A stretch of DNA of 64,000 bases, from contig OZ076410.1 of NCBI GenBank assembly GCA_964187785.1, positions 8,122,001 to 8,186,000 on the forward strand, written 5' to 3'. Shown here piece by piece: positions 1 through 64,000 of this stretch. Source of the stretch: Amphiscolops sp. MND2022 (lineage: Eukaryota). The position numbers and the translations under genes are program-made. The stretch's first letter is position 1. Each line of letters opens with the position of its first letter. The notes below the pieces were generated by a model. The model did not search any database and was not told the origin of the DNA. It worked only from the letters and a program-made list of their open reading frames with translations.

Positions 1-198
1 TTGATTTGATCTCGACTTGTGGTGCAATGGTCCATTCTTCTTCATGTTCAACTGGTTCTTCATTGACTGAAATCTCAATGACTGGTTTGTCTTCTTCGCT
101 CGTATAGTCAATGAGGAATGGAGCCTCGAAGGAAACTTCATAAATGCCTTCATTTTTGATGACGACTGTTTCTCCGCTTTCTGTGAATTCCACTTCAG
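1..198 (-). CDS. Exon, type-A beta-rich module, copy 1 (truncated by window edge)
   Basis: Acceptor tttgttatag|CTGAAG at 199/198; matches exons 1200-1508 and 2505-2813. Confidence 0.85.
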   Translation of the reverse strand, partial: MKWNSQKAEKQSSSKMKAFMKFPSRLHSSLTIRAKKTNQSLRFQSMKNQLNMKKNGPLHHKSRSNQ

Positions 199-9100: not shown

Positions 9101-12100
9101 GTACCGAAATGGGTTTGCGTTGTTGATCGAGGAAATCGGGACCTGGCAAAATATATTGACTTGAACAAAAAAGAGAAAAATAAGAGTTGGCAAGTTATTT
9201 AAGCGATTTAATCTACCAAACCTTTAACTTCTAAGTTGATTTTCTACGTATGATCTAAATACTAAAACTGAAATACCTGTAAAAGGAATTAAAACTACTG
9301 TTAGTAATATGCAAGAGACATGCGCTGATTAACAATGCTAGAATTGGATGCAATTTGAGCGATTTCAGATTCGTTAATGAAAACCTTGAGAAACAATCAA
9401 CAATATGCGACCAGCATTATGTTACTGTCAAAGAATTTATTGAAATTATTCAAATCCAATAAAAATAGTATACTTCAAAAATCAGAAACACTTACTACAA
9501 ATTGGTTTTTTCTCTAGAGTTAATGTCAGTAAATTACATTGTCCGACAAAGTTTGTCTTGAAGACTTGGCCAGAACACATGAGCAATCAAAAGATACAAC
9601 AGCCTTACAAAACATTGGAAAAATGCATTTTTAATAAATCTAATCGTTTCAAATTGAGACCTATCGAGATGAAATCAAGAATAAACTTCACGGCTTTAAT
9701 GAACAATTCCTCTTTGCAATCCGCGAAGAAATAAAAATGGTGTTTTTGGAACGTTTTATTTCTGATTCATTCAGAAATAGAACTGACATCTTGAGGAATA
9801 CTGGATAACAATTTTAAGAAAAATCGCCGAAACAAAAAACATATTTTTCTTTTTTGAATAATAACTACCGCTGCACCAAAATATTTCGCGTTTCCTATTC
9901 CAGGAAAAACTCAACTCAATTGGGACAACAAACGCAATTGGGAGAATAATAATGTCTTAGCACAAGTTGAACCTTGAAAAAACGTTCAAAAGACGGTTTT
10001 TGAAACGTCTCGCTCTGGATTGTCTTGTGTGTTGTGTGTAGTTCTGATGCGACTATGATAAGTAAATTCTGCAAGCAAGATTCAAGGCTTTTAAAATGAA
10101 ATCGCTCAAAGAAAAAAAAAGAAAAAAGAGGTTTGAATCTGCAGCAGTTCTAATCTACATTGATCTAAATCTAAGCAAGCATTGGTTTCACTACCTTCAC
10201 AATCACATTTCACAGTGTCGTGGACAATTTCGGGCAAAGTGACAGTGCAAACAAGTGACTCTCCATCCGGTTCCCCGACTCCCCTCGCCCCCCGAATGCA
10301 ATCAAAAGCCGTTCCCTTAAAAACCTTAGTTTCTCTTGATACGAGAAGATTATCTTGCGGATGTGCGATATTTGAAACAGCATCAGTGGTTTCACCAACA
10401 CTGGAATCGATGAAACCTATTTTTATAAGCAGCGCTTCCGCTTCCTCAGGATGCTTTCTGGCGAACTCGTTCGCAAGTAATTTGTTCCTGGCGTCATCAC
10501 TGAGCTCCTCGGCTCGTACATTTCGCTCAACGTTTTTGGTTAGAACTTGCTCAGCTTCCTCTGGATGCTGCTCCAGGAACTTACTGGCTAATCGTTTGTT
10601 TCTAGTTTCGTCATTGAGGTCTTCCAGTTTCCATTCTCCTTCAACCACACTGGCAAGCAATGCTTGCACTTCTTGGGGATGTTGTTCCAAAAATGCGATC
10701 GCCAGTTTCTCTTTCGTTGTAGAATCAGTGAGCTCATTCTTTTCAAGGCCTTCATCTCCGACTTTCGAAAGGACACGTTTTACATCTTCGGGGTGCTTTT
10801 CGAGGAACTCGTTCGCAAGTAATGCGTTCCTTGCACCATCACTGAGCTCCTCGGCTCGTACATTTCGCTCAACGTTTTTGGTTAGAACTTGCTCGCCTTC
10901 CTCTGGATGCTGCTCCAGGAACTTACTGGCTAATCGTTTGTTTCTAGTTTCGTCATTGAGGTCTTCCAGTTTCCATTCTCCTTCAACCACACTGGCAAGC
11001 AATGCTTGCGCTTCTTGGGGATGTTGTTCCAAAAATGCGATCGCCAGTTTCTCTTTCGTTGTAGAATCAGTGAGCTCATTCTTTTCAAGGCCTTCATCTC
11101 CGACTTTCGAAAGGAGACGTTTTACATCTTCGGGGTGCTTTTCGAGGAACTCGTTCGCAAGTAATGCGTTCCTTGCACCATCACTGAGCTCCTCGGCTCG
11201 TACATTTCGCTCAACGTTTTTGGTTAGAACTTGCTCGCCTTCCTCTGGATGCTGCTCCAGGAACTTACTGGCTAATCGTTTGTTTCTAGTTTCGTCATTG
11301 AGGTCTTCCAGTTTCCATTCTCCTTCAACCACACTGGCAAGCAATGCTTGCACTTCTTGGGGATGTTGTTCCAAAAATGCGATCGCCAGTTTCTCTTTCG
11401 TTGTAGAATCAGTGAGCTCATTCTTTTCAAGGCCTTCATCTCCGACTTTCGAAAGGACACGTTTTACATCTTCGGGGTGCTTTTCGAGGAACTCGTTCGC
11501 AAGTAATGCGTTCCTTGCACCATCACTGAGCTCCTCGGCTCGTACATTTCGCTCAACGTTTTTGGTTAGAACTTGCTCGCCTTCCTCTGGATGCTGCTCC
11601 AGGAACTTACTGGCTAATCGTTTGTTTCTAGTTTCGTCATTGAGGTCTTCCAGTTTCCATTCTCCTTCAACCACACTGGCAAGCAATGCTTGCGCTTCTT
11701 GGGGATGTTGTTCCAAAAATGCGATCGCCAGTTTCTCTTTCGTTGTAGAATCAGTGAGCTCATTCTTTTCAAGGCCTTCATCTCCGACTTTCGAAAGGAG
11801 ACGTTTTACATCTTCGGGGTGCTTTTCGAGGAACTCGTTCGCAAGTAATGCGTTCCTTGCACCATCACTGAGCTCCTCGGCTCGTACATTTCGCTCAACG
11901 TTTTTGGTTAGAACTTGCTCGCCTTCCTCTGGATGCTGCTCCAGGAACTTACTGGCTAATCGTTTGTTTCTAGTTTCGTCATTGAGGTCTTCCAGTTTCC
12001 ATTCTCCTTCAACCACACTGGCAAGCAATGCTTGCACTTCTTGGGGATGTTGTTCCAAAAATGCGATCGCCAGTTTCTCTTTCGTTGTAGAATCAGTGAG

Positions 12101-15100
12101 CTCATTCTTTTCAAGGCCTTCATCTCCGACTTTCGAAAGGACACGTTTTACATCTTCGGGGTGCTTTTCGAGGAACTCGTTCGCAAGTAATGCGTTCCTT
12201 GCACCATCACTGAGCTCCTCGGCTCGTACATTTCGCTCAACGTTTTTGGTTAGAACTTGCTCGCCTTCCTCTGGATGCTGCTCCAGGAACTTACTGGCTA
12301 ATCGTTTGTTTCTAGTTTCGTCATTGAGGTCTTCCAGTTTCCATTCTCCTTCAACCACACTGGCAAGCAATGCTTGCGCTTCTTGGGGATGTTGTTCCAA
12401 AAATGCGATCGCCAGTTTCTCTTTCGTTGTAGAATCAGTGAGCTCATTCTTTTCAAGGCCTTCATCTCCGACTTTCGAAAGGACACGTTTTACATCTTCG
12501 GGGTGCTTTTCGAGGAACTCGTTCGCAAGTAATGCGTTCCTTGCACCATCACTGAGCTCCTCGGCTCGTACATTTCGCTCAACGTTTTTGGTTAGAACTT
12601 GCTCGCCTTCCTCTGGATGCTGCTCCAGGAACTTACTGGCTAATCGTTTGTTTCTAGTTTCGTCATTGAGGTCTTCCAGTTTCCATTCTCCTTCAACCAC
12701 ACTGGCAAGCAATGCTTGCACTTCTTGGGGATGTTGTTCCAAAAATGCGATCGCCAGTTTCTCTTTCGTTGTAGAATCAGTGAGCTCATTCTTTTCAAGG
12801 CCTTCATCTCCGACTTTCGAAAGGACACGTTTTACATCTTCGGGGTGCTTTTCGAGGAACTCGTTCGCAAGTAATGCGTTCCTTGCACCATCACTGAGCT
12901 CCTCGACTCGTACATTTCGCTCAACGTTTTTGGTTAGAACTTGCTCGCCTTCCTCTGGATGCTGCTCCAGGAACTTACTGGCTAATCCTTTGTTTCTAGT
13001 TTCGTCATTGAGGTCTTCCAGTTTCCATTCTCCTTCAACCACACTGGCAAGCAATGCTTGCGCTTCTTGGGGATGTTGTTCCAAAAATGCGATCGCCAGT
13101 TTCTCTTTCGTTGTAGAATCAGTGAGCTCATTCTTTTCAAGGCCTTCATCTCCGACTTTCGAAAGGACACGTTTTACATCTTCGGGGTGCTTTTCGAGGA
13201 ACTCGTTCGCAAGTAATGCGTTCCTTGCACCATCACTGAGCTCCTCGGCTCGTACATTTCGCTCAACGTTTTTGGTTAGAACTTGCTCGCCTTCCTCTGG
13301 ATGCTGCTCCAGGAACTTACTGGCTAATCGTTTGTTTCTAGTTTCGTCATTGAGGTCTTCCAGTTTCCATTCTCCTTCAACCACACTGGCAAGCAATGCT
13401 TGCGCTTCTTGGGGATGTTGTTCCAAAAATGCGATCGCCAGTTTCTCTTTCGTTGTAGAATCAGTGAGCTCATTCTTTTCAAGGCCTTCATCTCCGACTT
13501 TCGAAAGGACACGTTTTACATCTTCGGGGTGCTTTTCGAGGAACTCGTTCGCAAGTAATGCGTTCCTTGCACCATCACTGAGCTCCTCGGCTCGTACATT
13601 TCGCTCAACGTTTTTGGTTAGAACTTGCTCGCCTTCCTCTGGATGCTGCTCCAGGAACTTACTGGCTAATCGTTTGTTTCTAGTTTCGTCATTGAGGTCT
13701 TCCAGTTTCCATTCTCCTTCAACCACACTGGCAAGCAATGCTTGCGCTTCTTGGGGATGTTGTTCCAAAAATGCGATCGCCAGTTTCTCTTTCGTTGTAG
13801 AATCAGTGAGCTCATTCTTTTCAAGGCCTTCATCTCCGACTTTCGAAAGGACACGTTTTACATCTTCGGGGTGCTTTTCGAGGAACTCGTTCGCAAGTAA
13901 TGCGTTCCTTGCACCATCACTGAGCTCCTCGGCTCGTACATTTCGCTCAACGTTTTTGGTTAGAACTTGCTCGCCTTCCTCTGGATGCTGCTCCAGGAAC
14001 TTACTGGCTAATCGTTTGTTTCTAGTTTCGTCATTGAGGTCTTCCAGTTTCCATTCTCCTTCAACCACACTGGCAAGCAATGCTTGCACTTCTTGGGGAT
14101 GTTGTTCCAAAAATGCGATCGCCAGTTTCTCTTTCGTTGTAGAATCAGTGAGCTCATTCTTTTCAAGGCCTTCATCTCCGACTTTCGAAAGGACACGTTT
14201 TACATCTTCGGGGTGCTTTTCGAGGAACTCGTTCGCAAGTAATGCGTTCCTTGCACCATCACTGAGCTCCTCGACTCGTACATTTCGCTCAACGTTTTTG
14301 GTTAGAACTTGCTCGCCTTCCTCTGGATGCTGCTCCAGGAACTTACTGGCTAATCGTTTGTTTCTAGTTTCGTCATTGAGGTCTTCCAGTTTCCATTCTC
14401 CTTCAACCACACTGGCAAGCAATGCTTGCACTTCTTGGGGATGTTGTTCCAAAAATGCGATCGCCAGTTTCTCTTTCGTGGTAGAATCAGTGAGCTCATT
14501 CTTTTCAAGGCCTTCATCTCCGACTTTAGAAAGGACACGTTTTACATCTTCGAGGTGCTTTTCGAGAAACTCGTTTGCAAGTAATGCGTTCCTTGCACCA
14601 TCACTGAGCTCCTCGGCTCGTACATTTCGCTCAACGTTTTTAGTTAGAACTTGCTCGGCTTCCTCTGGATGCTGCTCCAGGAACTTACGGGCTAATCGTT
14701 TGTTTCTAGTTTCGTCATTGAGGTCTTCCAGTTTCCAATCTTCTTCAACCACACTGGCAAGCAATGCTAGGGCTTCTTGGGGATGTTGTTCCAAAAATGC
14801 GATCGCCAGTTTCTCATTCGTTGTAGAATCAGTGAGCTCATTCTTTTCAAGGCCTTCATCTCCGACTTTAGAAAGGACACGTTTTACATCTTCGGGGTGC
14901 TTTTTGAGGAACTCGTTCGCAAGTAATGCGTTCCTTGCACCATCACTGAGCTCCTCAGCTCGTACATTTCGCTCAACGTTTTTGGTTAGAACCTGCTCGC
15001 CTTCCTCTGGATGCTGCTCCAGGAACTTACTGGCTAATCGTTTGTTTCTAGTTTCGTCATTGAGGTCTTCCAGTTTCCATTCTCCTTCAACCACACTGGC

Positions 15101-18100
15101 AAGCAATGCTTGCACTTCTTGGGGATGTTGTTCCAAAAATGCGATCGCCAGTTTCTCTTTCGTTGTAGAATCAGTGAGCTCATTCTTTTCAAGGCCTTCA
15201 TCTCCGACTTTCGAAAGGACACGTTTTACATCTTCGGGGTGCTTTTCGAGGAACTCGTTCGCAAGTAATGCGTTCCTTGCACCATCACTGAGCTCCTCGG
15301 CTCGTACTTTTCGCTCAACGTTTTTGGTTAGAACTTGCTCGCCTTCCTCTGGATGCTGCTCCAGGAACTTACTGGCTAATCGTTTGTTTCTAGTTTCGTC
15401 ATTGAGGTCTTCCAGTTTCCATTCTCCTTCAACCACACTGGCAAGCAATGCTTGCACTTCTTGGGGATGTTGTTCCAAAAATGCGATCGCCAGTTTCTCT
15501 TTCGTTGTAGAATCAGTGAGCTCATTCTTTTCAAGGCCTTCATCTCCGACTTTCGAAAGGACACGTTTTACATCTTCGGGGTGCTTTTCGAGGAACTCGT
15601 TCGCAAGTAATGCGTTCCTTGCACCATCACTGAGCTCCTCGACTCGTACATTTCGCTCAACGTTTTTGGTTAGAACTTGCTCGCCTTCCTCTGGATGCTG
15701 CTCCAGGAACTTACTGGCTAATCGTTTGTTTCTAGTTTCGTCATTGAGGTCTTCCAGTTTCCATTCTCCTTCAACCACACTGGCAAGCAATGCTTGCACT
15801 TCTTGGGGATGTTGTTCCAAAAATGCGATCGCCAGTTTCTCATTCGTTGTAGAATCAGTGAGCTCATTCTTTTCAAGGCCTTCATCTCCGACTTTCGAAA
15901 GGACACGTTTTACATCTTCGGGGTGCTTTTCGAGGAACTCGTTTGCAAGTAATGCGTTCCTTGCACCATCACTGAGCTCCTCGGCTCGTACATTTCGCTC
16001 AACGTTTTTGGTTAGAACTTGCTCGCCTTCCTCTGGATGCTGCTCCAGGAACTTACTGGCTAATCGTTTGTTTCTAGTTTCGTCATTGAGGTCTTCCAGT
16101 TTCCAATCTTCTTCAACCACACTGGCAAGCAATGCTAGCGCTTCTTGGGGATGTTGTTCCAAAAATGCGATCGCCAGTTTCTCATTCGTTGTAGAATCAG
16201 TGAGCTCATTCTTTTCAAGGCCTTCATCTCCGACTTTAGAAAGGACACGTTTTACATCTTCGGGGTGCTTTTCGAGGAACTCGCTTGCAAGTAATGCGTT
16301 CCTTGCACCATCACTGAGCTCCTCGGCTCGTACATTTCGTTCAACGTTTTTGGTTAGAACTTGCTCGGCTTCCTCTGGATGCTGCTCCAGGAACTTACTG
16401 CCTAATCGTTTGTTTCTAGTTTCGTCATTGAGGTCTTCCAGTTTCCAATCTTCTTCAACCACACTGGCAAGCAATGCTTGCGCTTCTTGAGGATGCTGTT
16501 CCAAAAATGCGATCGCCAGTTTTTCATTCGTTGTAGAACCAGTGAGCTCATTCTTTTCAAGGCCTTCATCTCCGACTTTAGAAAGGACGCGTTTTACATC
16601 TTCGGGGTGCTTTTTGAGGAACTCGCTAGCAAGTAATGCGTTCTTTGCACCATCACTGAGCTCCTCGGCTCGTACATTTCGTTCAACGTTTTTAGTTAGA
16701 ACTTGCTCGGCTTCCTCTGGATGCTGCTCCAGGAACTTACAGGCTAATCTTTTGTTTTTAGTTTCGTCATTGAGGTCTTCCAGTTTCCATTTTCCTTCAA
16801 CAACACTGGAAAGCAATGCTTGCGCTTCTTGGGGATGTTGTTCCAAAAATGCGATCGCCAGTTTCTCTTTCGTTGTAGAATCAGTGAGCTCATTCTTTTC
16901 AAGGCCTTCATCTCCGACTTTCGAAAGGACACGTTGTACATCTTCGGGGTGCTTTTTGAGGAACTCGCTTGCAAGTAATGCGTTCCTTGCACCATCACTG
17001 AGCTCCTCGGCTCGTACATTTCGTTCAACGTTTTTGGTTAGAACTTGCTCGGCTTCCTCTGGATGCTGCTCCAAGAACTTAATGGCTAATCGTTTGTTTC
17101 TAGTTTCGTCATTGAGGTCTTCCACTTTCCAACCTTCTTCAACCACACTAGCAAGCAATGTTTGCGCTTCTTGGGGATGCTGTTCCAAAAATGCGATCGC
17201 CAGTTTCTCATTCGTTGTAGAAGCAGTGAGCTCATTTTTTTCAAGGCCTTCATCTCCGACTTTAGAAAGGACACGTTTTACATCTTCGGGGTGCTTTTCG
17301 AGGAACTCGTTCGCAAGTAATGCGTTCCTTGCACCATCACTGAGCTCCTCGGCTCGTACATTTCGTTCAACGTTTTTGGTTAGAACTTGCTCGGCTTCCT
17401 CTGGATGCTGCTCCAGGAACTTAATGGCTAATCGTTTGTTTCTAGTTTTGTCATTGAGGTCTTCCACTTTCCAACCTTCTTCAACCACACTGGCAAGCAA
17501 TGCTAGCGCTTCTTGGGGATGTTGTTCCAAAAATGCGATCGCCAGTTTCTCATTCGTTGTAGAATCAGTGAGCTCATTCTTTTCAAGGCCTCCATCTCCG
17601 ACTTTAGAAAGGACACGTTTTACATGTTCGAGGTGCTTTTCGAGGAACTCGCTTGCAAGTAATGCGTTCCTTGCAACATCACTGAGCTCCTCGGCTCGTA
17701 CATTTCGTTCAACGTTTTTGGTTAGAACTTGCTCGGCTTCCTCTGGATGCTGCTCCAGGAACTTACTGCCTAATCGTTTGTTTCTAGTTTCGTCATTGAG
17801 GTCTTCCAGTTTCCAATCTTCTTCAACCATACTGGCAAGCAATGCTTGCGCTTCTTGAGGATGCTGTTCCAAAAATGCGATCGCCAGTTTTTCATTCGTT
17901 GTAGAATCAGTGAGCTCATTCTTTTCAAGGCCTTCATCTCCGACTTTAGGAAGGACGCGTTTTACATCTTCGGGGTGCTTTTCGAGAAACTCGTTTGCAA
18001 GTAATGCGTTCCTCGCACCATCACTGAGCTCCTCGGCTCGTACATTTCGTTCAACGTTTTTAGTTAGAACTTGCTGGACTTCCTCTGGATGCTGCTCCAG

Positions 18101-21100
18101 GAACTTACGGGCTAATCTTTTGTTTCTAGTTTCGTCATTGAGGTCTTCCAGATTCCATTCTCCTTCAACCACACTGGCAAGCAATGCTTGCGCTTCTTGG
18201 GGATGTTTTTCCAAAAACACGATCGCCAGTTTCTCATTCGTTGTAGAATCAGTGAGCTCATTCTTTTCACGGCCTTCATCTCCGACTTTAGAAAGGGCAC
18301 GTTTTACATCTTCGGGGTGCTTTTCGAAGAACTCGTTTGCAAGTAATGCGTTCCTTGCACCATCACTGAGCTCCTCGGCTCGTACATTTCGTTCAACGTT
18401 TTTGGTTAGAACTTGCTCGGCTTCCTCTGGATGCTGCTCCAGGAACTTACTGGCTAACCTTTTATTTCTAATTTTGTCATTGAGGTCTTCCAGTTTCGAA
18501 TCTTCTTCAACCACACTCGCAACCAATGCTTGCGCTTCTTGAGGATGCTGTTCCAAAAATGCGATCGCCAGTTTCGCATTCGTTGTAGAATCAGTGAGCT
18601 CATTCTTTTCAAGGCTTTCATCTCCGACTTTAGAAAGGACACGTTTTACATCTTCGGGGTGCTTTTCGAGGAACTCGTTTGCAAGTAATGCATTCCTTGC
18701 ACCATCACTGAGCTCCACGGCTCGTACATTTCGTTCAACGATTTCAGTTAGAACTTGCTTGGCTTCCTCTGGATGCTGCTCCAGGAACTTACGGGCTAAT
18801 CTTTTGTTTCTAGTTTCGTCATTGAGGTCTTCCAGTTTCCATTCTCCTTCAACCACACTGGCAAGCAATGCTTGCGCTTCTTGGGGATGTTGTTCGAAAA
18901 ATGCGATCGCCAGTTTCTCATTCGTTATAGAATCAGTGAGCTCATTCTTTTCACGGCCTTCATCTCCGACTTTAGAAAGGACACGTTTTACATCTTCGGG
19001 GTGCTTTTCGAGGAACTCGTTTGCAAGTAATGCATTCCTTGCATCATCACTGAGCTCCACGGCTCGTACATTTCGTTCAACGTTTTTAGTTAGAACTTGC
19101 TTGGCTTCCTCTGGATGCTGCTCCAGGAACTTACTGGCTATTCTTTTGTTTCTAGTTTCGTCATTGAGGTCTTCCAGTTTCCAATCTTCTTCAACCACAC
19201 TGGCAAGCAATGCTAGGGCTTCTTGGGGATGTTGTTCCAAAAATGCGATCGCCAGTTTCTCATTCGTTGTAGAATCAGTGAGCTCATTCTTTTCAAGGCC
19301 TTCATCTCCGACTTTAGAAAGGACACGTTTTACATCTTCGGGGTGCTTTTTGAGGAACTCGTTCGCAAGTAATGCGTTCCTTGCACCATCACTGAGCTCC
19401 TCGACTCGTACATTTCGCTCAACGTTTTTAGTTAGAACTTGCTTGGCTTCCTCTGGATGCTGCTCCAGGAACTTACGGGCTAATCTTTTGTTTCTAGTTT
19501 CGTCATTGAGGTCTTCCAGTTTCCAATCTTCTTCAACCACACTGGCAAGCAATGCTAGGGCTTCTTGGGGATGTTGTTCCAAAAATGCGATCGCCAGTTT
19601 CTCATTCGTTGTAGAATCAGTGAGCTCATTCTTTTCAAGGCCTTCATCTCCGACTTTAGAAAGGACACGTTTTACATCTTCGGGGTGCTTTTTGAGGAAC
19701 TCGTTCGCAAGTAATGCGTTCCTTGCACCATCACTGAGCTCCTCGACTCGTACATTTCGCTCAACGTTTTTAGTTAGAACTTGCTTGGCTTCCTCTGGAT
19801 GCTGCTCCAGGAACTTACGGGCTAATCTTTTGTTTCTAGTTTCGTCATTGAGGTCTTCCAGTTTCCATTCTCCTTCAACCACACTGGCAAGCAATGCTTG
19901 CGCTTCTTGGGGATGTTGTTCAAAAAATGCGATCGCCAGTTTCTCATTCGTTGTAGAATCAGTGAGCTCATTCTTTTCAAGGCCTTCATCTCCGACTTTA
20001 GAGAGGACACGTTTTACATCTTCGGGGTGCTTTTCGAGGAACTCGTTCGCAAGTAATGCATTTCTTGCACCATCACTGAGCTCTACGGCTCGTACATTTC
20101 GTTCAACGTTTTTAGTTAGAACTTGCTTGGCTTCCTCTGGATGCTGCTCCAGGAACTTACGGGCTAATCTTTTGTTTCTAGTTGCGTCATTGAGGTCTTC
20201 CAGTTTCCATTCTCCTTCAACCACACTGGCAAGCAATGCTTGCGCTTCTTGGGGATGTTGTTCCAAAAATGCGATCGCCAGTTTCTCATTCGTTGTAGAA
20301 TCAGTGAGCTCATTCTTTTCAAGGCCTTCATCTCCGACTTTAGAAAGGACACGTTTTACATCTTCGGGGTGCTTTTCGAGGAACTCGTTTGCAAGTAATG
20401 CGTTCCTTGCACCATCACTGAGCTCCTCGAATCGTACATTTCGTTCAACGTTTTCAGTTAGAACTTGCTCGGCTTCCTCTGGATGCTGCTCCAGGAACTT
20501 ACGGGCTAATCTTTTGTTTCTAGTTTCGTCATCGAGGTCTTCCAGTTTCCATTCTCCTTCAACCACAATGGCAAGCAATGCTTTCGCTTCTTGGGGAAGT
20601 TGTTCCAAAAATGCGATCGCCAGTTTCTCATTCGTTGTAGAATCAGTGAGCTCATTCTTTTCAAGGCCTTCATCTCCGACTTTCGAAAGGACACGTTGTA
20701 CATCTTCGGGGTGCTTTTCGAGGAACTCGTTCGCAAGTAATGCGTTCCTTGCACCATCACTGAGCTCCTCGGCTCGTACATTTCGTTCAACGTTTTTAGT
20801 TAGAACTTGCTCGGCTTCCTCTGGATGCTGCTCCAGGAACTTACTGGCTAATCTTTTGTTTCTAGTTTCGTCATTGAGGTCTTCCAGTTTCCATTCTCCT
20901 TCAACCACACTGGCAAGCAATGCTTGCGCTTCTTGGGGATGTTGTTCCAAAAAGGCGATCGCCAGTTTCTCATTCGTTGTAGAATCAGTGAGCTCATTCT
21001 TTTCAAGGCCTTCATCTCCGACTTTAGAAAGGACACGTTTTACATCTTCGGGGTGTTTTTCGAGGAACTCGTTTGCAAGTAATGCGTTCCTTGCACCATC

Positions 21101-24100: not shown

Positions 24101-27100
24101 ATTAGACATGACACGTTTTACATCTTCGGGGTGCTTTTTGAGGAACTTGCTTGCAAGTAATGAGTTCCTTGCACCATCACTCAGCTCCTCGGCTCGTACT
24201 TTTCGTTCAACGTTTTTGGTTAGAACTTGCTCGGCTTCCTCTGGATGTTGCTCCAGGAACTCACTGGCTAATCTTTTGTTTCTAGTTTCGTCATTGAAGT
24301 CTTCCAGTTTCCATTCTCCTTCAACCACACTATCAAGCAATGCTTGCGCTTCTTGGGGATGCTGTTCCAAAAATGCGATCGCCAGTTTCTCATTCGTTGT
24401 AGAATCAGTGAGGTCATTCTCTTCAAGGCCTTCATCTCCGACTTTAGAAAGGACACGTTGTACATCTTCGGGGTGCTTTTCGAGGAACTCGTTTGCAAGT
24501 AATGCGTTCCTTGCACCATCACTGAGCTCCTCGGCTCGTACATTTCGTTCAATGTTTTTGTTTAGAACTTGCTCGGCTTCCTCTGGATGCTGCTCCAGGA
24601 ACTTACTGGCTAATCTTTCGTTTCTAGTTTCGTCATTGAGGTTTTCCAGTTTCCATTCTTCTTCAACCACTCTAGCAAGCAATGCTTGCGCTTCTTGGGG
24701 ATGTTGCTCCAAAAATGCGATCGCCAGTTTCTCATTCGTTGTAGAATCAGTGAGCTCATTCTTTTCAAGGCCTTCATCTCCAACATTAGACAGGACACGT
24801 TTTACATCTTCGGGGTGCTTTTTGAGGAACTGGCTTGCAAGTGATGCGTTCCTTGCACCTTCACTCAGCTCCTCGGCTCGTACATTTCGTTCAACGTTTT
24901 TGGTTAGAACTTCCTCGGCTTCCTCTGGATGTTGCTCCAGGAACTTACTGGCTAATCTTTCGTTTCTAGTTTCGTCATTGAGGTCTTCCAGTTTCCATTC
25001 TCCTTCAACCACACTAGCAAGCAATGCTTGCGCTTCTTGGGGATGTTGTTCCAAAAATGCGATCGCCAGTTTCTCATTCGTTGTAAAATCAGTGGGCTCA
25101 TTCTTTTCAAAGCTTTCATCTCCGACTTTAGAAAGGACACGTTTTACATCTTCGGGGTGCTTTTTGAGGAACTCGCTTGCAAGTAATGCGTTCCTTGCAC
25201 CATCACTGAGCTCCTCGGCTCGTACATTTCGTTCAACGTTTTTGGTTAGAATTTGCTCAGCTTCCTCTGGATGCTGCTCCAGGAACTTACTGGCTAATCT
25301 TTTGTTTCTAATTTCGTCATTGAGGACTTCCAGTTTCCAATCTTCTTCAACCACACTGGCAAGCAATGCTTGCGCTTCTTGGGGATGTTGTTCCAAAAAC
25401 GCGATCGCCAGTTTCTCATTCGTTGTAAAATCAGTGGGCTCATTCTTTTCAAAGCCTTCATCTCCGACTTTAGAAAGGACACGTTTTACATCTTCGGGGT
25501 GCTTTTTGAAGAACTCGCTTGCAAGTAATGCGTTCCTTGCACCATCACTGAGCTCCTCGGCTCGTACGTTTTGTTCGACGTTTTTGGTTAGAACTTGCTC
25601 AGCTTCCTCTGGATGCTGCTCCAGGAACTTACTGGCTAATCTTTTGTTTCTAGTTTCGTCATTGAGAGCTTCCAGTTTCCAATCTTCTTCAACCACACTG
25701 GCAAGCAATGCTTGCGCTTCTTGGGGGTGTTGTTCCAAAAACGCGATCGCCAGTTTCTCATTCGTTGTAAAATCAGTGGGCTCATTCTTTTCAAAGCTTT
25801 CATCTCCGACTTTAGAAAGGACACGTTTTACATCTTCGGGGTGCTTTTTGAGGAACTCGCTTGCAAGTAATGCGTTCCTTGCACCATCACTGAGCTCCTC
25901 GGCTCGTACATTTCGTTCAACGTTTTTGGTTAGAATTTGCTCAGCTTCCTCTGGATGCTGCTCCAGGAACTTACTGGCTAATCTTTTGTTTCTAATTTCG
26001 TCATTGATGACTTCCAGTTTCCAATCTTCTTCAACCACACTGGCAAACAATGCTTGCGCTTCTTGGGGATGTTGTTCCAAAAACGCGATCGCCAGTTTCT
26101 CATTCGTTGTAAAATCAGTGGGCTCATTCTTTTCAAAGCCTTCATCTCCGACTTTAGAAAGGACACGTTTTACATCTTCGGGGTGCTTTTTGAGGAACTC
26201 GCTTGCAAGTATTGCGTTCCTTGCACCATCACTGAGCTCCTCGGCTTGTACGTTTCGTTCAACGTTTTTGGTTAGAACTTGCTCGGCTTCCTCTGGATGC
26301 TGCTCCAGGAACTTACTGGCTAATCTTTTGTTTCTAATTTCGTCATTGAGGTCTTCCAGTTTCCAATCTTTTTCAACCACACTAGCAAGCAATGCTTGCG
26401 CTTCTTGAGGATGCTGTTCCAAAAATGCGATCGCCAGTTTTTCATTCGTTGTAGAATCAGTGAGCTCATTCTTTTCAAGGCCTTCATCTCCGACTTTAGA
26501 AAGGACGCGTTTTACATCTTCGGGGTGCTTTTTGAGGAACTCGCTAGCAAGTATTGCGTTCCTTGCACCATCACTGAGCTCCTCGGCTCGTACATTTCGT
26601 TCAACGTTTTTGATTAGAACTTGCTCGGCTTCCTCTAGATGCTGCTCCAGGAACTTACTGGCTAATCTCTTGTTTCTAGTTTCGTCATTGAGGTCTTCCA
26701 GTTTCCAATCTTCTTCAACCACACTGGCAAGCAATGCTTGCGCTTCTTGAGGATGCTGTTCCAAAAACGCGATCGCCAGTTTCTCATTCGTTGTAGAATC
26801 AGTGAGCTCATTTGTTTCAAGGCCTCCATCTCCGACTTTAGAAAGGACGCGTTTTACATCTTCGGGGTGCTTTTCGAGGAACGCGTTTGCAAGTAATGCG
26901 TTCCTTGCACCATCACTGAGCTCCTCGGCTCGTACATTTCGTTCAACGTTTTTGGTTAGAACTTGCTCGGCTTCCTCTGGATGCTGCTCCAGGAACTTAC
27001 TGGCTAATCTTTTGTTTCTAGTATCGTCATTGAGGTCTTCCAGTTTCCAATCTTCTTCAACCACACTGGCAAGCAATGCTTGCGCTTCTTGAGGATGCTG

Positions 27101-30100
27101 TTCCAAAAATGCGATCGCCAGTTTTTCATTCGTTGTAGAATCAGTGAGCTCATTCTTTTCAAGGCCTTCATCTCCGACTTTAGAAAGGACGCGTTTTACA
27201 TCTTCGGGGTGCTTTTTGAGGAACTCGCTAGCAAGTATTGCGTTCCTTGCACCATCACTGAGCTCCTCGGCTCGTACATTTCGTTCAACGTTTTTGATTA
27301 GAACTTGCTCGGCTTCCTCTAGATGCTGCTCCAGGAACTTACTGGCTAATCTTTTGTTTCTAGTATCGTCATTGAGGTCTTCCAGTTTCCAATCTTCTTC
27401 AACCACACTGGCAAGCAATGCTTGCGCTTCTTGAGGATGCTGTTCCAAAAATGCGATCGCCAGTTTCTCATTCGTTGTAGAATCAGTGAGCTCATTCTTT
27501 TCAAGGCCTTCATCTCCGACTTTAGAAAGGACGCGTTTTACATCTTCGGGGTGCTTTTCGAAGAACGCGTTTGCAAGTAATGCGTTCCTTGCACCATCAC
27601 TGAGCTCCTCGGCTCGTACATTTCGTTCAACGTTTTTGGTTAGAACTTGCTCGGCTTCCTCTGGATGCTTCTCCAGGAACTTACTGGCTAACCTTTTATT
27701 TCTAATTTTGTCATTGAGGTCTTCCAGTTTCGAATCTTCTTCAACCACACTGGCAACCAATGCTTGCGCTTCTTGAGGATGCTGTTCCAAAAATGCGATC
27801 GCCAGTTTCGCATTCGTTGTAGAATCAGTGAGCTCATTCTTTTTAAGGCCTTCATCTCCGACTTTAGAAAGGACGCGTTTTACATCTTCGGAGTGCTTTT
27901 TGAGGAACTCGCTAGCAAGTATTGCGTTCCTTGCACCGTCACTGAGCTCCTCGGCTCGTACATTTCGTTCAACGTTTTTGGTTAGAACTTGCTCGGCTTC
28001 CTCTGGATGCTGCTCCAGGAACTTACTGGCTAATCTTTTGTTTCTAGTTTTGTCATTGAGGTCTTCCAGTTTCCAATCTTCTTCAACCACACTGGCAAGC
28101 AATGCTTGCGCTTCTTGAGGATGCTGTTCCAAAAATGAGATCGCCAGTTTCTCATTCGTTGTAGAATCAGTAAGCTCATTCTTTTCAAGGCCTTCATCTC
28201 CGACTTTAGAAAGGACGCGTTTTACATCTTCGGGGTGCTTTTTGAGGAACTCGTTTGCAAGTATTGCGTTCCTTGCACCGTCACTGAGCTCCTCGGCTCG
28301 TACATTTCGTTCAACGTTTTTGGTTAAAACTTGCTCGGCTTCCTCTGGATGCTGCTCCAGGAACTTACTGGCTAATCTTTTGTTTCTAGTTTCGTCATTG
28401 AGGTCTTCCAGTTTCCAATCTTCTTCAACCACACTGGCAAGCAATGCTTGCGCTTCTTGAGGATGCTGTTCCAAAAATGCGATCGCCAGTTTTTCATTCG
28501 ATGTAGAATCAGTGAGCTCATTCTTTTCAAGGCCTTTATCTCCGACTTTAGAAAGGACGCGTTTTACATCTTCGGGGTGCTTTCTGAGGAACTCGCTAGC
28601 AAGTATTGCGTTCCTTGCACCGTCACTTAGCTCCTCGTCTCGTACATTTTGTTCAACGTTTTTGGTTAAAACTTGCTCGGCTTCCTCTGGATGCTGCTCC
28701 AGGAACTTACTGGCTAATCTTTTGTTTCTAGTTTCGTCATTGAGGTCTTCCAGTTTCCAATCTTCTTCAAACACACTGGCAAGCAATGCTTGCGCTTCTT
28801 GAGGATGCTGTTCCAAAAATGCGATCGCCAGTTTTTCATTCGATGTAGAATCAGTGAGCTCATTCTTTTCAAGGCCTTCATCTCCGACTTTAGAAAGGAC
28901 GCGTTTTACATCTTCGGGGTGCTTTCTGAGGAACTCGCTAGCAAGTATTGCGTTCCTTGCACCGTCACTGAGCTCCTCGGCTCGTAAATTTCGTTCAACG
29001 TTTTTGGTGAAAACTTGCTCGGCTTCCTCTGGATGCTGCTCCAGGAACTTACTGGCTAATCTTTTGTTTCTAGTTTCGTCATTGAGGTCTTCCAGTTTCC
29101 AATCTTCTTCAACCACACTGGCAAGCAATGCTTGCGCTTCTTGAGGATGCTGTTCCAAAAATGCGATCGCCAGTTTTTCATTCGTTGTAGAATCAGTGAG
29201 CTCATTCTTTTCAAGGCCTTCATCTCCCACTTTAGAAAGGACGCGTTTTACATCTTCGGGGTGCTTTTTGAGGAACTCGCTAGCAAGTATTGCGTTCCTT
29301 GCACCATCACTGAGCTCCTTGTCTCGTACATTTTGTTCAACGTTTTTGGTTAAAACTTGCTCGGCTTCCTCTGGATGCTGCTCCAGGAACTTACTGGCTA
29401 ATCTTTTGTTTCTAGTTTCGTCATTGAGATCTTCCAGTTTCCAATCTTCTTCAACCACACTGGCAAGCAATGCTTGCGCTTCTTGGGGGTGTTGTTCCAA
29501 AAACGCGATCGCCAGTTTCTCATTCGTTGTAGAATCAGTGAGCTCATTCTTTTCAAGGCCTTCATCTCCGACTTTAGAAAGGACGCGTTTTACATCTTCG
29601 GGGTGCTTTTTGAGGAACTCGCTAGCAAGTATTGCGTTCCTTGCACCGTCACTTAGCTCCTTGTCTCGTACATTTTGTTCAACGTTTTTGGTTAAAACTT
29701 GCTCGGCTTCCTCTGGATGCTGCTCCAGGAACTTACTGGCTAATCTTTTGTTTCTAGTTTCGTCATTGAGGTCTTCCAGTTTCCAATCTTCTTCAACCAC
29801 ACTGGCAAGCAATGCTTGCGCTTCTTGAGGATGCTGTTCCAAAAATGCGATCGCCAGTTTTTCATTCGATGTAGAATCAGTGAGCTCATTCTTTTCAAGG
29901 CCTTCATCTCCCACTTTAGAAAGGACGCGTTTTACACCTTCGGGGTGCTTTCTGAGGAACTCGCTAGCAAGTATTTCGTTCCTTGCACCGTCACTGAGCT
30001 CCTCGGCTCGTACGTTTTGTTCGACGTTTTTGGTTAGAACTTGCTCAGCTTCCTCTGGATGCTGCTCCAGGAGCTTACTGGCTAATCTTTTGTTTCTAGT

Positions 30101-33100
30101 TTCGTCATTGAGATCTTCCAGTTTCCAATCTTCTTCAACCACACTGGCAAGCAATGCTTGCGCTTCTTGGGGGTGTTGTTCCGAAAACGCGATCGCCAGT
30201 TTCTCATTCGTTGTAGAATCAGTGAGCTCATTCTTTTCAAGGCCTTCATCTCCGACTTTAGAAAGGACGCGTTTTACATCTTCGGGGTGCTTTTTGAGGA
30301 ACTCGCTAGCAAGTATTGCGTTCCTTGCACCGTCACTTAGCTCCTCGTCTCGTACATTTTGTTCAACGTTTTTGGTTAAAACTTGCTCGGCTTCCTCTGG
30401 ATGCTGCTCCAGGAACTTACTGGCTAATCTTTTGTTTCTAGTTTCGTCATTGAGGTCTTCCAGTTTCCAATCTTCTTCAACCACACTGGCAAGCAATGCT
30501 TGCGCTTCTTGAGGATGCTGTTCCAAAAATGCGATCGCCAGTTTTTCATTCGATGTAGAATCAGTGAGCTCATTCTTTTCAAGGCCTTCATCTCCGACTT
30601 TAGAAAGGACGCGTTTTACATCTTCGGGGTGCTTTCTGAGGAACTCGCTAGCAAGTATTGCGTTCCTTGCACCGTCACTGAGCTCCTCGGCTCGTACATT
30701 TCGTTCAACGTTTTTGGTGAAAACTTGCTCGGCTTCCTCTGGATGCTGCTCCAGGAACTTACTGGCTAATCTTTTGTTTCTAGTTTCGTCATTGAGGTCT
30801 TCCAGTTTCCAATCTTCTTCAACCACACTGGCAAGCAATGCTTGCGCTTCTTGAGGATGCTGTTCCAAAAATGCGATCGCCAGTTTTTCATTCGTTGTAG
30901 AATCAGTGAGCTCATTCTTTTCAAGGCCTTCATCTCCCACTTTAGAAAGGACGCGTTTTACATCTTCGGGGTGCTTTCTGAGGAACTCGCTAGCAAGTAT
31001 TGCGTTCCTTGCACCGTCACTGAGCTCCTCGGCTCGTACATTTCGTTCAACGTTTTTGGTGAAAACTTGCTCGGCTTCCTCTGGATGCTGCTCCAGGAAG
31101 TTACTGGCTAATCTTTTGTTTCTAGTTTCGTCATTGAGGTCTTCCAGTTTCCAATCTTCTTCAACCACACTGGCAAGCAATGCTTGCGCTTCTTGAGGAT
31201 GCTGTTCCAAAAATGCGATCGCCAGTTTTTCATTCGTTGTAGAATCAGTGAGCTCATTCTTTTCAAGGCCTTCATCTCCGACTCTAGAAAGGACGCGTTT
31301 TACATCTTCGGGGTGCTTTTTGAGGAACTCGCTAGCAAGTATTGCGTTCCTTGCACCGTCACTGAGCTCCTCGGCTCGTACATTTCGTTGAACGTTTTTG
31401 GTTAGAACTTGCTCGGCTTCCTCTGGATGCTGCTCCAGGAACTTACTGGCTAATCGTTTGTTTCTAGTTTCGTCATTGAGGTCTTCCAGTTTCCAATCGT
31501 CTTCAACCACACTGGCAAGCAATGCTTGCGCGTCTTGAGGATGCTGTTCCAAAAATGCGATCGCCAGTTTTTCATTCGTTGTAGAATCAGTGAACTCATT
31601 CTTTTCAAGGCCTTCATCTCCGACTTCAGAAAGGACGCGTTTTACATCTTCGGGGTGCTTTTTGAGGAACTCGCTAGCAAGTATTGCGTTCCTTGCACCG
31701 TCACTTAGCTCCTCGTCTCGTACATTTTGTTCAACGTTTTTGGTTAAAACTTGCTCGGCTTCCTCTGGATGCTGCTCCAGGAACTTACTGGCTAATCTTT
31801 TGTTTCTAGTTTCGTCATTGAGGTCTTCCAGTTTCCAATCTTCTTCAACCACACTGGCAAGCAATGCTTGCGCTTCTTGAGGATGCTGTTCCAAAAATGC
31901 GATCGCCAGTTTTTCATTCGATGTAGAATCAGTGAGCTCATTCTTTTCAAGGCCTTCATCTCCGACTTTAGAAAGGACGCGTTTTACATCTTCGGGGTGC
32001 TTTCTGAGGAACTCGCTAGCAAGTATTGCGTTCCTTGCACCGTCACTGAGCTCCTCGGCTCGTACATTTCGTTCAACGTTTTTGGTGAAAACTTGCTCGG
32101 CTTCCTCTGGATGCTGCTCCAGGAAGTTACTGGCTAATCTTTTGTTTCTAGTTTCGTCATTGAGGTCTTCCAGTTTCCAATCTTCTTCAACCACACTGGC
32201 AAGCAATGCTTGCGCTTCTTGAGGATGCTGTTCCAAAAATGCGATCGCCAGTTTTTCATTCGTTGTAGAATCAGTGAGCTCATTCTTTTCAAGGCCTTCA
32301 TCTCCGACTCTAGAAAGGACACGTTTTACATCTTCGGGGTGCTTTTTGAGGAACTCGCTAGCAAGTATTGCGTTCCTTGCACCGTCACTGAGCTCCTCGG
32401 CTCGTACATTTCGTTGAACGTTTTTGGTTAGAACTTGCTCGGCTTCCTCTGGATGCTGCTCCAGGAACTTACTGGCTAATCGTTTGTTTCTAGTTTCGTC
32501 ATTGAGGTCTTCCAGTTTCCAATCGTCTTCAACCACACTGGCAAGCAATGCTTGCGCGTCTTGAGGATGCTGTTCCAAAAATGCGATCGCCAGTTTTTCA
32601 TTCGTTGTAGAATCAGTGAGCTCATTCTTTTCAAGGCCTTCATCTCCGACTTTAGAAAGGACGCGTTTTACATCTTCGGGGTGCTTTTTGAGGAACTCGC
32701 TAGCAAGTATTGCGTTCCTTGCACCGTCACTGAGCTCCTCGGCTCGTACATTTCGTTCAACGTTTTTGGTTAGAACTTGCTCGGCTTCCTCTGGATGCTG
32801 CTCCAGGAACTTACTGGCTAATCTTTTGTTTCTAGTTTCGTCATTGAGGTCTTCCAGTTTCCATTCTCCTTCAACCACACTGGCAAGCAATGCTTGCGCT
32901 TCTTGAGGATGCTGTTCCAAAAATGCGATCGCCAGTTTCTCATTCGTTGTATAATCAGTGAGCTCATTCTTTTCAAGGCCTTCATCTCCGACTTTAGAAA
33001 GGACGCGTTTTACATCTTCGGGGTGCTTTTTGAGGAACTCGCCAGCAAGTATTGCGTTACTTGCATCATCACTGAGTTCCTGGGCTAGTACATTTCGTTC

Positions 33101-36100
33101 AACGTTTTTGGTTAGAACTTGCTCGGCTTCCTCTGGATGCTGCTCCAGGAACTTGCTGGCTAATCTTTTGTTTCTAGTTTCGTCATTGAGGTCTTCCAGT
33201 TTCCAATCTTCTTCAACCACACTGGCAAGCAATGCTTGCGCTTCTTGAGGATGCTGTTCTAAAAATGCGATCGCCAGATTTTCATTCGTTGTAGAATCAG
33301 TGAGCTCATTCTTTTCAAGGCCTTCATCTCCGACTTTAGAAAGGACGCGTTTTACATCTTTGGGGTGCTTTTTGAGGAACTCGCTAGCAAGTATTGCGTT
33401 ACTTGCATCATCACTGAGTTCCTGGGCTAGTACATTTCGTTCAACGTTTTTGGTTAGAACTTGCTCGGCTTCCTCTGGATGCTGCTCCAGGAACTTACTG
33501 GCTAATCTTTTGTTTCTAGTTTCGTCATTGAGGTCTTCCAGTTTCCATTCTCCTTCAACCACACTGGCAAGCAATGCTTGCGCTTCTTGAGGATGCTGTT
33601 CCAAAAATGCGATCGCCAGTTTTTCATTCGTTGTAGAATCAGTAAGCTCATTCTTTTCAAGGCCTTCATTTCCAACTTTAGAAAGGACGCGTTTTACATC
33701 TTCGGGGTGCTTTTTGAGGAACTCGCTAGCAAGTATTGCGTTACTTGCATCATCACTGAGTTCCTGGGCTAGTACATTCCGTTCAACGTTTTTGGTTAGA
33801 ACTTGCTCGGCTTCCTCTGGATGCTGCTCCAGGAACTTACTGGCTAATCGTTTGTTTCTAGTTTCGTCATTGAGGTCTTCCAGTTTCCAATCTTCTTCAA
33901 TCACACTGGCAAGCAATGCTTGCGCTTCTTGAGGATGCTGTTCCAAAAACGAGATTGCCAGTTTTTCGTTCCGCTCAGAATCAGTGAGCTCCTCATTTTC
34001 AAGACCTCCAGTTCTGTCTTGAGGATTCTCTCTGAGGAACTGATTCGCAAGCAGTTTGCTCGTAGGGTTTTTGCTGTGCTCATCTGGTAAAGTCTTCCTT
34101 TCGATGTTTTTGTTCAGTTTTGCTTCCTCATGCGACTCTGATCTATTGTTCGCTGCTGTTTCAATTTTAGCGACATCATCCAAATGCTCAAGCTCTGTGT
34201 TTCTCCTTGTATCTCCCAAAAAGAGCATCGCTGCGTCAGCTGCTGACTGATTTTTACCGTAGTCTCCTTCATTGGCTTCGCCATTTTCTATTACGCAAGT
34301 TTTTATTCTTTGAGTTGTTGCGTTTTGCAACTGTTTAGAAAAAGTAAATGAGCTTTTGGGGGAGCCGGGGGTTTTTTGAGTGACACGGTGAGCTGTAAAA
34401 TGATAAATGTTTACTACGAGCTCGATAATCAAGGTCAATTGAGGGGTCGAATGCTCTTGCTAATTGTATTTCCTGTCATAGAACGCTAATTTCATAAGTT
34501 TCTTGTTCAAACCGCTTCACTGAAAACAGTTTACGTAAGAAAGTATCGATTAATTCCAAACAATTCCAATTTGTAGTTCAATAGAAGACTTCGTGTATTT
34601 TGCATTTTTATTGCCAGGACTAAAAGAAGTTACTGATGGGAAAATTAACGGCTTCAAGGTACCTCAATTACTACTGAATACTACTGAATGTTTTTGGTGC
34701 TTTACCTCAAAACTAGGCACTGATCGGATTCTAAAACAAGACGTTTATAAAATCTGGATGTAAAATAAAAGAAGCCTTACTTGAATTTTGCGAAGTTGGA
34801 GAATCTTCGACAACTGTAACATCTGCTACTTCCTGCAATTCTTCCATTGTTTTGATGCAACTTGCGTCGTCTAGATCATCCTTTTCTTGGACTTCGTCAG
34901 CCACTGAAGCGTCTAGCGCCTCTTCAGTCTCTTCAGTTGTTTTGACATCTATTTGCTCTTCTGGTTGTTCCTCCTCCTGTTTTTCGAACGAGACGTCGAC
35001 TTTGTCTTCAGCTGTTTCTGATTCTTCAACCACTGTAGCATCTGGTGCCTCTTCAACTTCCTCAGTTGTTTTGACATCAATTTGCTCTTCTGGTTGTTCC
35101 TCCTCCTGTGTTTCGAACGAGACGTCGACTTTGTCTTCAGCTGTTTCTGATTCTTCAACCACTGTAGCATCTGGTGCCTCTTCAGTCTCTTCAGTTGTTT
35201 TGACATCTATTTGCTCTTCTGGTTGTTCCTCCTCCTGTTTTTCGAACGAGACGTCGACTTTGTCTTCAGCTGTTTCTGATTCTTCAACCACTGTAGCATC
35301 TGGTGCCTCTTCAGTCTCTTCAATTGTTTTGACATCAATTTGCTCTTCTGGTTGTTCCTCCTCCTGTGTTTCGAACGAGACGTCGACTTTGTCTTCAGCT
35401 GTTTCTGATTCTTCAACCACTGTAGCATCTGGTGCCTCTTCAGTCTCTTCAGTTGTTTTGACATCTATTTGCTCTTCTGGTTGTTCCTCCTCCTGTTTTT
35501 CGAACGAGACGTCGACTTTGTCTTCAGCTGTTTCTGATTCTTCAACCACTGTAGCATCTGGTGCCTTTTCAGTCTCTTCAATTGTTTTGACATCTATTTG
35601 CTCTTCTGGTTGTTCCTCCTCCTGTGTTCCGAATGAGACGTCAACTTTGTCTTCAGCTGTTTCTGATTCTTCAACCACTGTAGCATCTGGTGCCTCTTCA
35701 GTCTCTTCAGTTGTTTTGACATCTATCTGCTCTTCTGGTTGTTCCTCCTCCTGTGTTTCGAACGAGACGTCGACTTTGTCTTCAGCTGTTTCTGATTCTT
35801 CAAACACTGTAGCATCTGGTGCATCTTCAGTCTCTTCAGTTGTTTTCACATCTATTTGCTCTTCTGGTTGTTCCTCCTCCTGTGATTCGAACGAGACGTC
35901 GACTTTGTCTTCAGCTGTTTCTGATTCTTCAACCACTGTAGCATCTGGTGCCTCTTCAGTCTCTTCAGTTGTTTTGACATCTTTTTGCTCTTCTGGTTTT
36001 TCCTCCTCCTGTGTTTCGAACGAGACGTCGACTTTGTCTTCAGCTGTTTCTGATTCTTCAAACACTGTAGCACCTGGTGCCTCTTCAGTCTCTTCAGTTG

Positions 36101-63695: not shown

Positions 63696-64000
63696 CTGAA
63701 ACGCAGATTTAAATCTTTTGCTTGGTTTTGCAAACAAGAGGTCGAACATGGGGCATTTTTCTGACAAGACCTCGAGCATCAGCTTCTAGGTATGAATTGC
63801 AACGAAGAACTCTTCTGAAGAACCGGAAGACCTTCGATTTGAAATGTGCTGGATCCAACAAGTGTTTCTTTGTTGAGATTCGAGCATTTATCGAAAAACC
63901 GAATCCGCAATATAAAAACATCTGGTTGTCTCTTATCACGTAAAAAAACAACAAAAAAAACAAAACACGAAACTAAAACGTAGTAATAAAGACAAAGGAT

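Follow-up and report, generated by a model that had tools for sequence, protein, structure and literature searches.

The giant exon and its repeat array

The minus strand of the window, a stretch of 64,000 nucleotides from Amphiscolops sp. MND2022 (assembly GCA_964187785.1, contig OZ076410.1, positions 8,122,001 to 8,186,000), carries a tandem repeat within a frame that runs without a stop over 10109-34459, or 8,117 codons from stop to stop in an open reading frame (ORF) scan of the window. The original prediction had placed one very large internal coding exon at 10195-34392, and both the open frame and the canonical AG/GT borders confirmed it. The acceptor (...ttttacAG/C, with the slash at the border) follows a polypyrimidine tract and sets the exon start at 34392, and the donor (GAAG/GTAGTG) sets the exon end at 10195. 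The stretch behaves as coding sequence and most likely is a genuine protein-coding exon. The exon and its parts are as follows.

10195..34392, minus strand: giant exon of 24,198 nt (8,066 codons); both ends in phase 1, AG at 34394-34393 and GT at 10194-10193
34004..34392, minus strand: part of the exon N-terminal to the array; its translation shows one or two decayed sub-repeats, e.g. ...LLANQFLRENPQD...
10406..34003, minus strand: array of 69 units of 342 bp (114 amino acids each; 207 sub-repeats of 38 amino acids), as obtained by cutting the translation every 114 residues
10195..10405, minus strand: C-terminal non-repeat tail of the exon; Cys-containing, with 0 indels relative to a second allele

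As computed from the translation, the exon product would have a mass of ~916 kDa, a pI of 4.8, and a net charge of -12 per unit. The C-terminal tail seems to lead into beta-rich modules encoded downstream. The 342-bp unit was confined to the giant exon, where 69 of 69 six-frame matches in the whole 1.07-Gb genome were located.

All 69 units of the cut translation were in perfect register, each 83 to 98% identical to the consensus, and Tandem Repeats Finder reported a period of 342, 68.9 copies, 96% matches, and 0% indels over 10452-34007, in agreement with the ~69 repeats of 114 amino acids claimed previously. The units differed by ~6% at the DNA level, some of them being identical; the first and last units were the most diverged, and several inner blocks were identical copies. 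Shifting the consensus unit against itself gave 48 identities in 114 positions at 38 or 76 residues, compared to 9.4 ± 6.1 (maximum, 16) at other shifts, which indicated that the 3 x 38 substructure is real; the three 38-mers equaled those that had been proposed. Eleven columns were invariant across the three 38-mers (L6, D8, N12, L15, A16, F19, L20, E21, H23, P24, and L31), so that the earlier list of conserved columns was recovered with E21 as an addition. The unit contains 13% Leu, 9% Ala, and 2.7% Pro, with Pro restricted to one motif column.

The sense frame contained 0 stops in its 8,117 codons, versus ~8.7 stop-creating states expected under neutrality from the 219 distinct variant states among the units. 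The only antisense frame without a stop in the consensus, used as a control, had 3 stop-creating states, in 27 units, versus 7.4 expected. This indicated that the neutral expectation was ~2-fold too high, and the calibrated expectation for the sense frame was therefore ~3.5 stops, with 0 seen. The absence of indels reported by Tandem Repeats Finder extended over 23.6 kb of array, and when two alleles of the locus were compared, there were 9 indels in 2.4 kb of flanking introns versus 0 in the exon parts, the first indel lying 75 nt beyond the predicted donor of the giant exon. Differences from the consensus were most frequent at the third codon position (401, versus 228 and 227 at the other two), and the pairwise ratio of nonsynonymous to synonymous differences (pN/pS) among units was 0.42. 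The 11 motif columns were poorer in amino acid variants than the others (0.73 versus 1.26 states per column; P = 0.003), and synonymous variation in them was not lower than elsewhere. This pattern, together with weak constraint on the rest of the sequence, fits a protein in which the frame, the general character, and a short motif outweigh the exact sequence. Plus-strand open frames of up to 2,621 amino acids across 10164-30509 were a by-product of the stop-free consensus, broken by the three stop-creating variants in 27 units, and are not genes.

The second allele came from another assembly of the locus (ENA ERZ25074608, contig ctg179174_66x_l, 52071-72319), found by a search with the exon that follows the giant exon (8777..9142). 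That exon was 99% identical in the ENA contig, and the unique flank was 98.3% identical between the contig and the window, with flank divergence of 1.7 to 3%. The same frame was open in the repeat ORF of the ENA contig, which has 5,258 amino acids and ~43 units, compared to an ORF of 8,110 amino acids in the window. The 25 units that were readable in the ENA contig occurred in the same order as the window units, with 0 to 5 nt differences per matched unit, and the contig was short of whole units mainly where the window units are identical to each other. The contig represents either an allele that is truly shorter or another haplotype whose units were collapsed in assembly, and the frame is preserved in both cases.

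This difference in ORF length, together with the location of the extra window units in identical or near-identical blocks (a repeat block of 8 units and the final 11 units), would also be explained if the exon were real but the 69 copies were an assembly error, with identical blocks as false duplications and a true array nearer to the ~43 units of the ENA contig. We consider this unlikely. With 1.7% divergence in its flanks, the ENA contig represents a different allele regardless, and a minimizer-graph metagenome assembler, as the style of the contig name suggests, would collapse just such identical blocks. Copy number was also checked by comparing the depth of repeat k-mers with that of the adjoining single-copy contig in four short-read-type runs of one sample. 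This depth, which is not itself a copy number, was ~65 to 73x the single-copy depth in two of the four runs (X1 and X3), a rough value that fits ~69 copies.

The array is young; whole units are gained and lost, and selection keeps its frame open. The decayed edges, homogenized center, identical blocks, and whole-unit differences between alleles fit a history of unequal exchange, which would also vary protein length between individuals.

The surrounding titin-like gene

For the genomic context, 100 kb was fetched on each side of the window (264 kb in all), and selected ORFs were scanned with Pfam. The original prediction, although correct about the exon, had missed this context: the giant exon lies among immunoglobulin (Ig) exons and PEVK-like exons of a titin-like gene that spans more than 200 kb. 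Five upstream exons on the same strand matched the Pfam I-set Ig family (E = 2e-27 to 7e-10), and the best PDB match of an upstream exon with two Ig domains was titin I65-I70 (E = 1.4e-30), compared to 2.7e-13 for the best non-titin entry. Downstream, an exon of 6,000 codons on the same strand contains two I-set Ig domains and is followed by a final Ig-like exon. By its architecture, the gene appears to be titin-like, of the I-connectin/Sallimus kind, and is not a proven orthologue. In reading order, acidic exon-plus-intron units and two exons of 43-amino-acid repeats precede the giant exon, and beta-rich modules come after it. The features nearest to the giant exon are as follows.

40681..49003, minus strand: open frame of ~51 acidic repeats of 43 amino acids plus unique ends; donor ACAG/GTAAGA after 40681, phase 1
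34781..39199, minus strand: exon of ~32 acidic repeats of 43 amino acids (129 bp) with PEVK-like composition; starts and ends in phase 1
34393..34780, minus strand: intron upstream of the giant exon; GTAAGG donor after 34781, AG acceptor before 34392
9143..10194, minus strand: intron downstream of the giant exon; five indels relative to the second allele
8777..9142, minus strand: next exon, 122 codons, phase 1-1 with the donor inferred; opens a series of beta-rich modules of ~110 amino acids, no Pfam match

All four of the junctions that were checked were in phase 1 (the donor at 40681, the acceptor at 39199, 34781/34392, and 10195/9142). Therefore, the giant exon and the exons around it could be spliced in or left out with the reading frame intact, as in the titin I-band.

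The 43-amino-acid units of 34781-39199 and 40681-49003 are very acidic (…EDKVDVSFETQEEEQAEEQIDIKTTEEVEEAPEATVVEES…), had no Pfam match, and together amount to ~4,200 residues. Farther upstream in the gene, 56446-64000 and the sequence on to ~68431 consist of ~18 tandem copies of a 676-bp unit, each with an exon-like frame of ~114 to 124 amino acids that encodes an acidic peptide and with a near-identical intron. On the other side of the giant exon, positions 1-9142 and the sequence on to approximately -11300 hold two alternating kinds of beta-rich modules of ~110 to 145 amino acids, one per exon, which end in His-rich tips (…HHVHHVKF…, …HKNHKHVHF…) and for which no Pfam family was found. The 6,000-codon exon (~18 kb; -34539 to -16540 relative to the window, minus strand) is a second giant exon of the same gene, in which E/V/K/P-rich repeats of ~50 amino acids (…EELKPVEVAEAQVPVESENADAKPMEKAEVAQLES…) and W-x-R-x-R-E motifs stand beside the two I-set Ig domains; a relative of 5,799 amino acids (P0006, ENA) was 82% identical to it over the Ig part. 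Introns or flanks of the giant gene also contain retrotransposon ORFs with BEL/Pao- or gypsy-like pol, which occur on both strands.

Predicted fold and possible relatives of the 38-residue repeat

The original prediction had proposed two helices per 38-mer, broken at His-Pro. AlphaFold models of 342 residues, built once from one sequence alone and once from a 23-row alignment of three-unit blocks, contained the same 18 helices, a pair in every 38-mer interrupted at His-Pro, so that both runs agreed with this proposal, if at low confidence. Moreover, Pro or Gly was gained in only 21 of 5,427 predicted-helix cells. There was no confident packing between repeats (predicted template modeling score, 0.23 to 0.24), and the hairpins were not stacked. 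Foldseek searches with the low-confidence model gave nothing at an E value of ≤0.001; the best E value was 0.02, and the weak list consisted of generic alpha-solenoids with TM scores of 0.14 to 0.29. The models make a helical hairpin plausible, and they neither showed nor refuted a solenoid or rod.

The proteins on the weak Foldseek list resemble the repeat in being built of helix-turn-helix hairpins of similar length (tetratricopeptide repeat [TPR], 34 amino acids; HEAT, 37 to 47 amino acids; and the prenyltransferase-alpha repeat). In contrast to those proteins, the repeat of the giant exon had no Pfam match at an E value of ≤1, no match among PDB sequences, TM scores of ≤0.29, and unstacked hairpins in AlphaFold. 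A Pfam-A hmmscan of three units at this threshold gave no TPR, HEAT, ARM, ankyrin, or spectrin match, and PDB sequences gave no match at an E value of ≤10 with either the single sequence or the 23-row profile, which upheld the earlier exclusion of these five families. Spectrin repeats have ~106 amino acids and three helices, compared to six helices per 114 amino acids in the present model. Hits to MT0933_antitox, MxiC_C, Peptidase_M9, and other Pfam families covered ~20 to 50 residues each, were inflated by the repeats, and were rejected as spurious; resemblances to FliG/MgtE-like and HEAT-like motifs had no support from Pfam and were dropped. The ESM Atlas yielded nothing usable (best score, 0.77).

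The only hits of a HMMER search of 1.84 billion protein representatives were five prokaryotic STAND NTPases, each carrying 36- to 39-residue helical repeats, at marginal E values (3.5e-6 to 5e-4), and a second homologue search with ORF residues 1-600 gave no match. Both searches missed the near-identical ENA ORF and are therefore weak evidence of absence in other species. Within the Pfam, PDB sequence, ESM Atlas, and representative protein sets searched, the 38-residue repeat matches no described family. Among the STAND NTPases (P0002 and relatives), one has C-terminal repeats with the same 38-residue period, and its E-W-L-D-x-H-P-E-D resembles the E-F-L-E-x-H-P-E-D of the giant exon at the predicted turn (shared pattern, E-[FW]-L-[DE]-x-H-P-E-[DE]). 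However, the second helix differs (R-A-A-Y-L-G-L), the E values are marginal and inflated by the repeats, and these are prokaryotic signaling proteins. The two kinds of repeat most likely arrived independently at a common helix-cap and turn motif. P0001, P0002, and P0004 are STAND NTPases (nSTAND_NTPase5 / AAA_16) with C-terminal arrays of helical repeats of 36 to 39 amino acids that carry W-L-D-x-H-P-E-D and match no Pfam repeat family.

Likely role of the array

The position of the giant exon among Ig and PEVK-like exons of a titin-like gene points to its most likely function. The array resembles the PEVK and I-band springs of vertebrate titin in that it lies between tandem I-set Ig segments, is acidic, is built of short tandem modules, and is flanked by exons of the same phase; it also adjoins E/V/K/P-rich sequence. 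Titin PEVK modules are Pro-rich and disordered, have 26 to 28 amino acids, and are each encoded by a small exon, whereas the modules here have 38 residues, are rich in Leu, Ala, and Glu, are predicted to be helical with Pro in one column, and are all 207 encoded by one exon. Scanning of the gene pieces with Pfam gave no PEVK-type (PPAK) match. Invertebrate titins (C. elegans TTN-1, crayfish I-connectin, and Drosophila Sallimus/D-titin) likewise combine Ig domains with long taxon-specific tandem repeats, some of them predicted to be alpha-helical. To judge by titles given in PMC12198301, invertebrate titin-like proteins carry lineage-specific elastic or coiled-coil repeat regions, with coiled-coil and new elastic regions in C. 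elegans TTN-1 (Flaherty 2002) and an extensibility of up to 3.5 µm in crayfish I-connectin (Fukuzawa 2001). The array appears to differ from these proteins in its unit length, its motif, and its single 24-kb exon, which are undescribed in the literature searched. Lineage-specific repeats in titin-like springs are already known; this unit, its predicted helicity, and its packaging in a single exon of 24.2 kb are not described in the literature and databases searched.

We consider it probable that the locus is a titin/connectin-like giant gene in which the exon provides a spring or spacer of ~207 helical hairpins of 38 residues, with expression, muscle location, fold, and spring role inferred. 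Such a gene would contain tandem I-set Ig domains alongside long segments of unique sequence and of acidic repeats, as in the I-band or Sallimus/I-connectin type, and the 38-residue module would have been amplified as 114-residue triplets to ~207 copies, each forming a short predicted helix-turn-helix that bends at the conserved His-Pro. The array, which lies between Ig chains and in line with PEVK-like segments, would act in series with those segments as an element of length and extensibility; its acidic helical hairpins would be marginally stable and open at low force, and the chain would extend when pulled, with ~8,000 residues at 0.38 nm each giving a contour length of ~3 µm if fully extended. 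Given the phase 1 surroundings, exon inclusion or skipping could tune the protein. The exon is most likely a young lineage-specific spring or spacer module, and its copy number may vary.

A number of results weigh against this assignment. At the level of the gene, the selected ORFs scanned across 264 kb contained neither an Fn3 nor a kinase domain, which would fit the kinase-less I-connectin/Sallimus type but is no proof of it. SESTD1-CCDC141-titin is a conserved neighborhood (PMC12198301), and an exon-by-exon genome search for CRAL_TRIO_2 (SESTD1 type), which may miss the gene, gave four hits with 0 on this contig. Since this search detected no SESTD1-type neighbor near the locus, strict orthology to titin/Sallimus was not shown. 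At the level of the exon, the donor of the giant exon is of moderate strength only, and amino acid constraint was weak, with 151 nonsynonymous and 68 synonymous distinct variant states versus a neutral expectation of 153 and 57. The allelic pN/pS was 0.74, based on only 33 differences. Run searches gave only the four runs of one sample, and no RNA run carrying the exon was among them; a 1,028-bp contig spanning 33920-34947 was present in all four with 0 differences and at single-copy depth, the intron included, and no splice joints were found in these runs, which indicated that all four are DNA. At the level of the fold, the mean predicted local distance difference test (pLDDT) score was 47 for the single-sequence model and 44 for the alignment model, with most residues below 50, and the unit fell slightly to the disordered side in a charge-hydropathy test (0.406 versus a boundary of 0.451).

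Some of these results would also be obtained if the array lay outside any mature mRNA as an intronic satellite, the open frame being a by-product of very recent amplification. In addition to the missing RNA run and the nearly neutral number of nonsynonymous states, many units are identical or nearly so and one antisense frame is likewise open in the consensus. Nevertheless, a satellite is highly improbable, because 23.6 kb of array has 0 stops and 0 indels, whereas the antisense control is broken in 27 units and the introns carry indels. Moreover, canonical splice sites in the right phase bound the array on both sides, the motif columns are constrained, the second allele keeps the frame, and even the decayed edge units remain in it.

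More weight is due to the possibility that the exon is coding but largely disordered, an entropic spring like titin PEVK whose helices, if any, are transient and do not fold into hairpins. The pLDDT values in both AlphaFold models, the mean hydropathy below the folding boundary, the weak amino acid constraint, and the clearly acidic, low-complexity neighboring exons are all consistent with it. However, the Leu and Ala contents are high, Pro is scarce and confined to one motif column, and gains of Pro or Gly in helix cells are rare. A hydrophobic L-A-x-x-F-L pattern and an H-P turn are common to the three sub-repeats and still constrained, and the unit is much nearer to the charge-hydropathy boundary than the neighboring acidic repeats. 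Furthermore, a low pLDDT is expected of any orphan without a deep alignment; the alignment of 23 three-unit blocks brought no gain. A wholly disordered spring is therefore less likely than a helical one, though it is the rival that we take most seriously.

The invariant columns themselves suggest a further role for the repeat, in which the polar residues D8, N12, E21, and H23 of each 38-residue motif would hold a binding partner, for example a filament protein or metal ion, so that the array would be a multivalent docking scaffold more than a spring. Nebulin-like rulers provide a precedent for repeat arrays that bind filaments, and 4 of the 11 invariant columns are polar or charged and are kept in ~200 copies. 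Helix capping and turn formation explain the same polar residues, however, and no partner is known, which makes a scaffold very unlikely.

A bolder form of the helical spring or spacer would make the His-Pro hairpin an undescribed fold family whose ~207 copies stack into a rod of some hundreds of nanometers and unfold to ~3 µm. The array would then be a new kind of muscle spring in one of the largest known coding exons, with muscle extensibility tuned by a unit number that differs between individuals. We hold this form to be doubtful, if possible.

The passive elasticity of muscle and the range over which it works are set by titin-like proteins, and it is in the spring segments of these proteins that lineages invent new sequence. 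If expressed, the giant exon would add ~0.9 MDa and up to ~3 µm of contour length from one module type without known relatives. It would also be well suited for testing how load acts on a tandem array that is helical or nearly so, and it would illustrate how such arrays can expand and contract in steps of whole units without loss of frame. The human titin gene likewise has a very large single coding exon, the largest in TTN, at 17,106 bp (PMC12198301). At 24,198 bp, the giant exon is longer than this 17.1-kb exon and, by comparison, is purely one tandem repeat.

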